64,000 nucleotides of DNA, taken from positions 514,104,001-514,168,000 of the forward strand of contig NW_027362762.1 of NCBI RefSeq assembly GCF_046119375.1. The letters are read 5' to 3'. This DNA comes from Phyllobates terribilis (lineage: Eukaryota). The position numbers and the translations under genes were made by a program. The notes under the pieces are model-generated. The model saw only the letters and a program-made list of their open reading frames with translations, ran no database searches and was not told where the DNA came from. Below, piece after piece: positions 47,501 through 50,500 of this stretch (its first letter is position 1; each line of letters starts with the position of its first letter).

Positions 47501-50500
47501 GGTCTTGTATTTGTTTCTCCCGAAGCTGTTTTGCCTTTTCCTCTTTCTCAAGCCACACATTCTTCTTGGCAGCTGCAGGTAATTATAAAGTTTGGTTAGA
47601 GATCATGCTTGAGCTGCATGACTAGGATAATCTGTACTCTCTCTTTGGATATATAATTACATAAATATATAAGATTGGTCACAGGGAATTAAAATCTTCA
47701 GTTCTACTGAAAATCCATCAGCAAATATGCTGCCATAAATAACAGCTTGCATTTTCTGATGGGCAGCCCATAGCAGCTACTGTACAGTAATTCCAAGAAT
47801 AGTACACATGAAGGAACTACTGTTCATACAATTTCTAGTATATATGTGTGATTTCACAACTTTACTAGTTTATGGACTTGTCTAGAGCAGAAACAAAGGT
47901 GTACTCAAATGTGTCTAAATTAGTCAGTTCTACAACTTGTTAAAATTCTTCATCTTTCAAAAGTGTCCCGATTTTGAGCTTAAAAGGTTTTTTTTCAGGC
48001 ATAAGATACACTATTCTATAGCTAAACTGGTTCACAAGTGAAAAAAGTTGAATTCAACTAATTTTGTGGTGCTGAAAACGAATATGATGCTTAAATTTGC
48101 TGATGGGCTCCAATTTTCAAGATCCAGAGGAGGTTGTAATTACTTAGGACACCTTTCATACAGGCTTATAGAAAAATTGCATCTTTATTATTTCATCATC
48201 ATTATTGCATTGTTAGTAGCTAGTCTATTACGTCGTCTATTGAACCAAACAAAAAGCGACAACTCTGCTCCGATGACGTAATCCTAATTACAGTTGAATC
48301 ACCTACTTTTATAAATGTTCTCTGTGTAAGGTACACAGTTTAAGGATTTCTCATCTTAGTTTCTTAGTATATTGACAGGTTTCTATGTTTATTCAAATAT
48401 GCCTCGTTCTTGCAGTGACAAAGCAGATAGTATTTGGAAAATGCAAAAGGTAAAAGCTGGTGATAAGAAGCACTAAGGCATATAAAATTCAGCAATTACT
48501 ACCTTTTTAATAAAGTCCTTGTAAAAACACAACGCGTTTCGACGGCATGCAAGCCGTCTTCATCAGGTGATACAAGGAAATGACCTCAGGAATGTTATAT
48601 AGGATCAAAAAACAATCCCTCTGATGCACAATATTAAAATACCAATGGGTATCAATTGCAGAGTTTATCAGGGGGACCCTAGTCAAATGACCCTTACAAT
48701 TATTGATCATATAGATAAAAGTATGCAAAATAGTTTGGGCAATCTTATTAAGAAAGAAAGCTTCTGGATTTTTAAATTGTGCACTTTACACCGGAAGGAC
48801 ATAATCTTACTATTGAAAATATAATGAAATGAGCTTTATAATAGCTTTTAGCGTATATAATTGAATGCATCGTTTAACATTTATTAATTTTAAATTAAAT
48901 ATACATGCATGTGCACGCATGCTTTATTTATGTGTGTGCATGTGTGTATATGTGTATGTATATATATTTTTATTTTTCAATTATTTTTTAAATAAGTGTT
49001 TTTTTTTTTTGTGAAATATAATATGATTCATGGTATCCTACATGCTGGTTTGTGTTCCCCCCGCTGGCTTGCAGACAATATTAGGGGGTTAAATTACTGA
49101 TTGTTATTATGTCATTAATGAGCGGTCCAATCGGTTTGATTTTTGATCCTATATAACATTCCTGAGGTCATTTCCTTGTATCACCTGATGAAGACGGCTT
49201 GCATGCCGTCGAAACGCATTGTGTTTTTACAAGGACTTTATTAAAAAGGTAGTAATTGCTGAATTTTATATGCCTTAGCGCTTATCACCAGCTTTTACCT
49301 TTTGCATTTTCCACATGTCACCCCTTTGGGGTTACTGGTGAGCTGCTTTGGCTTACTTTTTAATTTTAGCTCATGGACTGTTTGCCCCTCATTTTGACAT
49401 CCTAGCGCTTCTTACTACCAGCTTCAATGTCTTTTTTCTTTTCAAAGCAGATTGTATTTGGCACATATGCAGAGAAGTCACTTTTGCGTCACAAAGGTGA
49501 AACTTGATGAGGAAAGCCTACAAACTGTATTTTGGCTGCAAAATAAGAGACCAGGACAAGAATTGGGATCCACACCTATGCTGCAATAGATGTACATTGC
49601 CACTTCCCCTGCAACCACTGGGTAAGATGTAATATATGCCTTTTGCAGTCCCAATGATCTGGAGAGAGACAAGCGATCACAATACCAATTGCTATTTCTA
49701 CATGGTCCCCCCCCCTACCAGATTACGAAAGGAGATTCAAGGAGAAAGAAGTGAACTTTACAGCATCCAAACATTCATCTGCAATGCACCCAGTATCACA
49801 TACAAAAGAACTGCTGGTTCCAAAAGCACCAGAAACATTTTCAGTCCAGTCAAGGGAAGAAGAATAGGGCGCTTGGTGTCAAAGCATCTTCCTCTCACAA
49901 TTCAGACTTTTTGCCAGCAACCTCAACTGAACCACACCTTATAAAACACAAAGTGAACTGAACGATCTTGTTAGAGATTTGGATCTGCCCAAGACTAAGG
50001 CTGAACTTCTAGGTTCCAGGCTACAGCAGTGGAATCTCCTAGCGGGCGATGTTTGGATTTCTTTGTTCCGCCATAATGATTAAGATCTTGTCCACTACTT
50101 CTTCATGGAAGGCGATCTTGTGGCATGCAACAACATCAACAGTTTAATGGAAGCTCTGAAGAGAAGTCATAAGAGGATTGGAGGCTTTTCATTGATTAGT
50201 CCAAAACGAGCCTAAAAGCCCTCTTGCTGCATAATGGCAATGTGCTACCTTCAATTCCAGTTGATTATGCAGTCCGAATCAGCTGTTGAGGTGCCTGAAC
50301 TATGACCAACATTTGTGGACTCTCTGTGGTGACATAAAGGTGGTTGCCTTCTTACTTGGTCTTCAGGGTGGATACACAAAGTACTGCTGCTTTCTGTGTG
50401 AGTGGGATAGTCGTACAGGAAAATATTACTACTACAATAAAAGACTGGCCTCTCCGACATTCACTTCAGCCAGGGAGTAAAAATATCCTGCATCCAGCAC

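Follow-up and report, generated by a model that had tools for sequence, protein, structure and literature searches.

Does a hammerhead motif that lies in the intron of an expressed gene act on the transcript of that gene, or was it simply brought there by a mobile element? The question is raised by a locus in the frog Phyllobates terribilis (contig NW_027362762.1), in a window of 64,000 nucleotides, by which we mean the whole stretch of DNA that was analysed. The first-pass annotation of this window had read a hammerhead ribozyme on the minus strand, in an intron assigned to MAP7D1, and had proposed that it could influence splicing or transcript output. Our analysis suggests another answer. 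The motif is very probably the minimal hammerhead of a Penelope-like element (PLE), or of a non-autonomous derivative of such an element, which would have arrived in a twin-primed, head-to-head insertion and would be carried in the intron as a passenger. The features of the locus are listed in Table 1.

Table 1. Features of the insertion and of its host intron (positions in the window)
Feature	Position	Strand	Remarks
Host intron, MAP7-family gene	47574–56279	-	GT..AG ends; contains the whole insertion
Downstream exon, MAP7 microtubule-binding coiled coil	47408–47573	-	Protein match and spliced RNA contigs
Target-site duplication, left copy	48419–48437	+	Direct repeat, 19 bp
Left arm, truncated repeat copy	48438–48618	-	Stops 93 nt past the predicted cut site
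Minimal type I hammerhead	48517–48577	-	Core 48528–48569; in sense orientation relative to the host gene
Spacer between the two heads	48619–49132	.	Moderately repeated sequence on either side of a microsatellite
Right arm, inverted copy	49133–49316	+	96% identical to the left arm; hammerhead at 49182–49223
3' extension	49317–49442	+	126 nt, right copy only; opens with a small CCCC/GGGG hairpin
Target-site duplication, right copy	49443–49461	+	18/19 bases identical to the left

The host gene was identified from spliced RNA and from protein matches. In two small runs that behave as RNA, a contig covers the downstream exon at high depth, and the ends of this contig match 56280–56309 and 45851–45880 exactly, which joins the exon to exons at 56280 and 45880. 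The translation of the downstream exon matches residues 82–137 of human Ensconsin (MAP7) with an E value of 3.8e-7, and a further exon of the minus strand, at 35201–35545, matches the Pfam MAP7 family. Taken together, the splice joins, the GT..AG ends of the 8.7-kb intron and the MAP7 matches show that the host is an expressed MAP7-family gene and that the left hammerhead is intronic and on the sense strand, in agreement with the first description of the locus. In the four probable RNA runs, of which contigs only were used, no RNA contig matches the arms of this locus with high identity.

The motif itself also reads as it had been described. On the minus strand, the core consists in order of CAC, CUGAUGA, an extra A, the two strands of helix II (GACGGC and GCCGUC, closed in the left hammerhead by the 6-nt loop UUGCAU), GAAA, CGCGU, U and GUG. 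The core boxes CUGAUGA and GAAA are both present and H17 is a U, as in the minimal hammerheads of PLEs; in the standard numbering position 17 is U48531, and the predicted cut lies between 48531 and 48530. The extra A (A48559) stands after A9 and before G10.1. Both the cut site and this extra base had been read correctly. The G10.1–C11.1 pair is formed by G48558 and C48541, and helix II comprises six Watson–Crick pairs, within the 6–8 bp of PLE minimal hammerheads. Helix III of the left copy is the palindrome ACGCGU alone (48537–48532), a palindrome of the PLE type, and so small a palindromic helix III implies action as a dimer. Stem I had been read as 3 bp. This holds for the inner part of helix I, CAC/GUG, but not for the whole helix: beyond a 1x4 internal loop (U48570 facing U48527–48524) a 7-bp closing stem is formed by CCUUGUA (48577–48571) pairing with UACAAGG (48523–48517). 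A loop 1 followed by a closing stem is the architecture of metazoan type I hammerheads, and it is found in helix I of the PLE forms. The boxes, the G10.1–C11.1 pair, helix II, the palindrome and helix I thus all support the initial assignment of the motif to the minimal type I hammerheads of the Penelope kind.

The window was searched with a strict descriptor that combines the core boxes, an optional extra base, G10.1–C11.1, a helix II of 4 bp or more, a palindromic 15.1–16.1, an H17 other than G and a helix I of 3 bp or more. This descriptor has a single match in the window, the core at 48528–48569, and 0 matches in 300 windows of 64 kb simulated from the first-order composition of the real one. 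A relaxed descriptor has two matches in the window, compared with 0.01 per simulated window. Since the simulations are almost free of matches, chance does not account for the motif, whose sequence marks it as a true minimal hammerhead of type I and of the Penelope kind. A search with covariance models, which the first-pass annotation had put forward as a check, did not recover it: the Rfam models give no hammerhead match at E<=10, either on 5 kb or on a 141-nt stretch, and the motif does not score near the threshold of any of the Rfam families (type I, HH9, HH10 and others). This result agrees with the published remark that minimal forms escape canonical descriptors (PMC4209133). Patterns of the motif had no match in metagenome contigs (two patterns) or in viral contigs, and a full-text search of the literature did not find its exact sequence.

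The motif is neither single nor specific to the gene. A near-identical copy is present on the plus strand, at 49182–49223, with CTGATGA and GAAA around an identical helix II (49185–49214). The two hammerheads are about 615 nt apart on opposite strands, and each belongs to one of two arms of about 181–184 nt that are arranged head to head with 514 nt between them. The hammerheads differ by one base, at a CpG site, where the right copy has an A (49218) and the left copy a G (48533); the G-to-A change at 49218 breaks the helix III palindrome of the right copy, which reads ACGCAU. Between the arms, which make up the whole family alignment, we counted five substitutions and one 3-nt indel over about 181 nt, and the left hammerhead retains all five of its CpGs, the right one four. 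The low divergence of the arms and the retained CpGs point to a fairly recent insertion. The repeat analysis found no direct repeat of the hammerhead unit; the copies are inverted, so that the tandem order of retrozymes is not seen here.

The limits of the insertion emerged when contigs from two DNA runs of this organism were compared with 47300–49500. Several contigs that come from other copies of the host repeat jump from about 48436 to about 49465 and omit about 1030 nt. Since these contigs skip the block, 48438–49442 was inserted into a repeat older than itself, and the 19-mer found at both of its ends is a target-site duplication. Summed contig depth reaches 1000–3400 over the arms versus 8.3 on the single-copy flank (run X1), which identifies the arms as members of a high-copy family. 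In addition, mirrored junctions between a left and a right arm occur in other contigs, one linking 48541 to 49210 and one linking 48570 to 49182 across three intervening bases; head-to-head pairs truncated at other points are therefore present at further sites of the genome. The layout is that of a PLE insertion, with an inverted 5'-truncated neighbor copy, a target-site duplication and, as an optional element, a tail, but the extension measures 126 nt rather than 30–40 bp. The ORF pieces in and around the insertion have no Pfam match to a reverse transcriptase (RT), an endonuclease or a transposase, and no RT or GIY-YIG coding sequence adjoins the arms. The link with PLEs is consequently drawn from the type of ribozyme and from the layout of the insertion.

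Several other repeats lie in or near the insertion. The spacer holds a microsatellite (TG/TA) as well as an A/T run (about 48909–49001), and the TG/TA-rich microsatellite at 48892–48971 marks the place where the two truncated copies meet. MicroRNA models, several of them, give weak matches on this microsatellite; these are below threshold and most likely spurious. The inner sides of the spacer, just upstream of each arm, are not clearly alike. The 3' extension of the right copy includes a repeat unit, about 120 nt long (49321–49443), that recurs at other loci in both DNA and RNA contigs; in probable RNA contigs it is flanked by unrelated sequence, which indicates that copies of it are transcribed somewhere. 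To the left of the insertion, 48040–48335 is a very high-copy repeat of about 300 nt, with a summed contig depth of 12,000–24,000 versus 8.3 on the single-copy flank and with contig ends clustered at 48041 and 48244.

Elsewhere in the window, on the plus strand, an open frame of 1351 codons with RVT_1, RNase H and integrase domains (3–4055) is the pol of a Ty3/gypsy-type LTR retrotransposon that runs past the window start. A hAT-type transposase with a BED zinc finger and a hAT C-terminal dimerisation domain occupies 14828–18527 on the same strand, in two adjacent open frames of 1034 and 215 codons. Three near-identical plus-strand frames of 60–62 codons, starting at 12457, 12804 and 13371, suggest a roughly tandem, unevenly spaced repeat of a few hundred nucleotides at 12457–13550, a region in which the hammerhead descriptor has no match. 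Finally, short plus-strand open frames at 50265–50787 resemble remnants of transposon proteins, with no significant Pfam match.

By analogy with the PLEs studied so far, the most likely history of the insertion would be a single retrotransposition event in which both strands served for priming. An element would have entered another repeat within the MAP7-family intron, its endonuclease would have nicked both target strands, and both ends would have primed reverse transcription (a scheme derived from PMC11167929 and PMC8557442). Such an event would yield the observed block of about 1 kb, in which two 5'-truncated copies face each other by their heads, have their 3' ends outward and are bordered by a 19-bp target-site duplication. 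Nicking and extension of both DNA strands have been shown for a purified PLE protein (Frangieh et al., PMC11167929), and such action would explain the head-to-head arms. Within the life cycle of the element, the hammerhead would process multi-copy transcripts, either as a dimer or together with the element's protein. One template and two primings fail to explain the unlike inner sequences of the spacer and the extension of the right copy, which is much longer than the usual PLE tail.

A different origin has to be weighed, in which a DNA transposon or foldback element supplied the arms as its terminal inverted repeats, and the hammerhead-like sequence is unrelated to ribozymes. Long inverted arms around a spacer, together with the lack of a nearby retroelement ORF and of an Rfam match, are what this origin leads one to expect. 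However, the 19-bp target-site duplication and the one-sided 126-nt extension are difficult to reconcile with cut-and-paste families, whose duplication lengths do not fit 19 bp. Moreover, every sequence trait of PLE minimal hammerheads is present, with a chance expectation below 0.01 per window, and the contigs in which the arms are joined at variable truncation points behave as expected for 5' truncation. An origin from a DNA transposon is therefore very improbable, and the insertion of a PLE, or of a derivative, remains the preferred reading of the locus.

The host pre-mRNA contains one motif in the sense orientation, the other copy being antisense, so that a dimer cannot form in cis, and in the order of the transcript the antisense arm precedes the sense hammerhead. 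In the predicted fold of a 931-nt RNA (48410–49340) both arms are paired over their full length, with an energy of -408.7 kcal/mol versus -185 for shuffled sequences (z-score -25); the predicted duplex, near-perfect over about 185–190 bp, buries the whole hammerhead. In a local region of 73 nt, the minimum-energy fold pairs GAAAC with a downstream U-run, and the hammerhead fold lies 3.7 kcal/mol higher. A monomer-competent fold with a stable helix III is not predicted. When two 42-nt cores are co-folded, an intermolecular helix of eight pairs (AACGCGUU) is predicted across the palindrome, and this helix would also engage A14 and U17. In the intron RNA, the antisense arm would be made first, and the sense hammerhead, devoid of a stable helix III, would be trapped in the long duplex without being cleaved. 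These models suggest that the hammerhead of the MAP7-family intron is most likely inert.

The same duplex could itself be the feature that matters to the host, as an intronic double-stranded RNA of about 185–190 bp that is a substrate for A-to-I editing or for the production of small RNAs, the ribozyme being irrelevant. Its predicted stability is very high and the host intron is transcribed, in keeping with this possibility. The effects proposed would bear on the host transcript or on silencing of the repeat family, but no RNA contig covers the arms here, and intronic inverted repeats are frequent and for the most part not known to have an effect. We regard a role of the double-stranded RNA as very unlikely.

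A further reading, inferred in the first-pass annotation, is that of a working intronic ribozyme, which would cut the MAP7-family pre-mRNA between 48531 and 48530 and thereby lower or modulate splicing and output. The intron is real and expressed and the motif has the sense orientation within it, the catalytic boxes are intact, helix I is longer than first read, and conserved intronic hammerheads are known in amniote genes. Against this, the monomer lacks a stable helix III, the transcript lacks a second sense copy, the motif is buried in the predicted fold by the antisense arm upstream of it, and the hammerhead fold is not the local minimum-energy fold. The cleavage triplet is GUU, a weak one for hammerheads. 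The motif further belongs to a high-copy repeat with intact CpGs rather than to a conserved site, published monomers of this class are inactive (PMC4209133), and the adjacent exons are normally spliced at high depth. With a single sense copy, a predicted masking duplex and flanking exons that are spliced correctly, the suggested influence on splicing or transcript output finds no support, and a functional ribozyme at this position is very improbable. Equally improbable is the proposal that, in cells with an active autonomous Penelope element, its protein, or transcripts with the same palindrome, aid the intronic copy in trans to cut the host pre-mRNA, or that the duplex of ribozyme and anti-ribozyme masks the motif and gives rise to small RNAs directed against the family. 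Either of these would couple transposon activity to the output of the MAP7-family gene.

Known intronic hammerheads offer a first comparison for this passenger copy. HH9 in RECK and HH10 in CTCL are domesticated intronic hammerheads of amniotes (PMC6155905), and the motif described here resembles them in being a type I hammerhead located in sense orientation within an intron of a protein-coding gene. However, HH9 and HH10 have a stable helix III, conserved loop contacts, deep orthologous conservation and Rfam matches, whereas the present motif has neither a stable helix III nor an Rfam match and is a member of a high-copy repeat. The lesson of the locus is that an intronic hammerhead, however perfect it looks, needs to be checked first against the repeat content of the genome.

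The non-LTR retrozymes of animals carry type I hammerheads that need to dimerize, and they are abundant in amphibians (PMC7229834; bioRxiv 10.64898/2026.07.22.740005). It has been argued that they derive from the terminal repeats of PLEs, and about 44% of the Xenopus tropicalis copies overlap introns (10.64898/2026.07.22.740005). Retrozymes differ from the present locus in that their units are arranged in head-to-tail tandem and can give circular RNAs, whereas the pair described here is inverted.

A closer parallel is provided by PLEs whose insertion has been analysed. Genomic PLE insertions are strongly 5'-truncated, often with an adjoining inverted truncated copy, and they show an optional 30–40-bp tail and a bias for microsatellites (Craig et al., PMC8557442). 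In vitro work on one PLE, PAc (Poseidon of Anolis carolinensis), placed the start of reverse transcription within the RNA, 111–118 nt into the ORF, that is 85–92 nt past the hammerhead cut; cleavage required the protein of the element, hammerhead cleavage was dispensable for insertion in vitro, and no RNA-seq reads started or ended at the hammerhead site (PMC11167929). The present motif shares with PAc the hammerhead architecture and the extra base before helix II, and the left arm ends 93 nt past the cut, compared with about 85–92 nt in PAc. It differs from PAc in sequence, and in that the right copy extends 126 nt further than the left. The modest value of the locus lies here: it illustrates cleanly what would be a head-to-head PLE insertion made by twin priming, and its target-site duplication is clear.

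The best match is with the PLE minimal hammerheads as a class. These sit in the terminal repeats (pLTR) of the elements and are characterized by a longer helix II with an unpaired base at its 5' end, a conserved G10.1–C11.1 pair, palindromic 15.2–16.2 and loop 3, and a helix I that is short and carries loop 1 before a closing stem (Cervera and de la Pena 2014, PMC4209133). Their copies number in the thousands in Xenopus (about 9,000), coelacanth, fishes and reptiles, mostly as single motifs in truncated elements, with some pairs 100–700 bp apart on opposite strands; single motifs show no detectable self-cleavage in vitro, and dimers cleave only weakly (PMC4209133). This copy differs from full PLEs, as it has no RT-GIY-YIG ORF beside it. 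Nevertheless, it has in common with the minimal hammerheads the boxes, the extra base, the G10.1–C11.1 pair, a 6-bp helix II, a short helix I and a palindromic helix III, as well as its many genomic copies and an opposite-strand pair whose spacing of about 615 nt falls within the 100–700 bp range. The motif is expected to be of little consequence for its host gene, and resembles the numerous minimal Penelope-type hammerheads found in amphibian, fish and reptile genomes, of which many are intronic.
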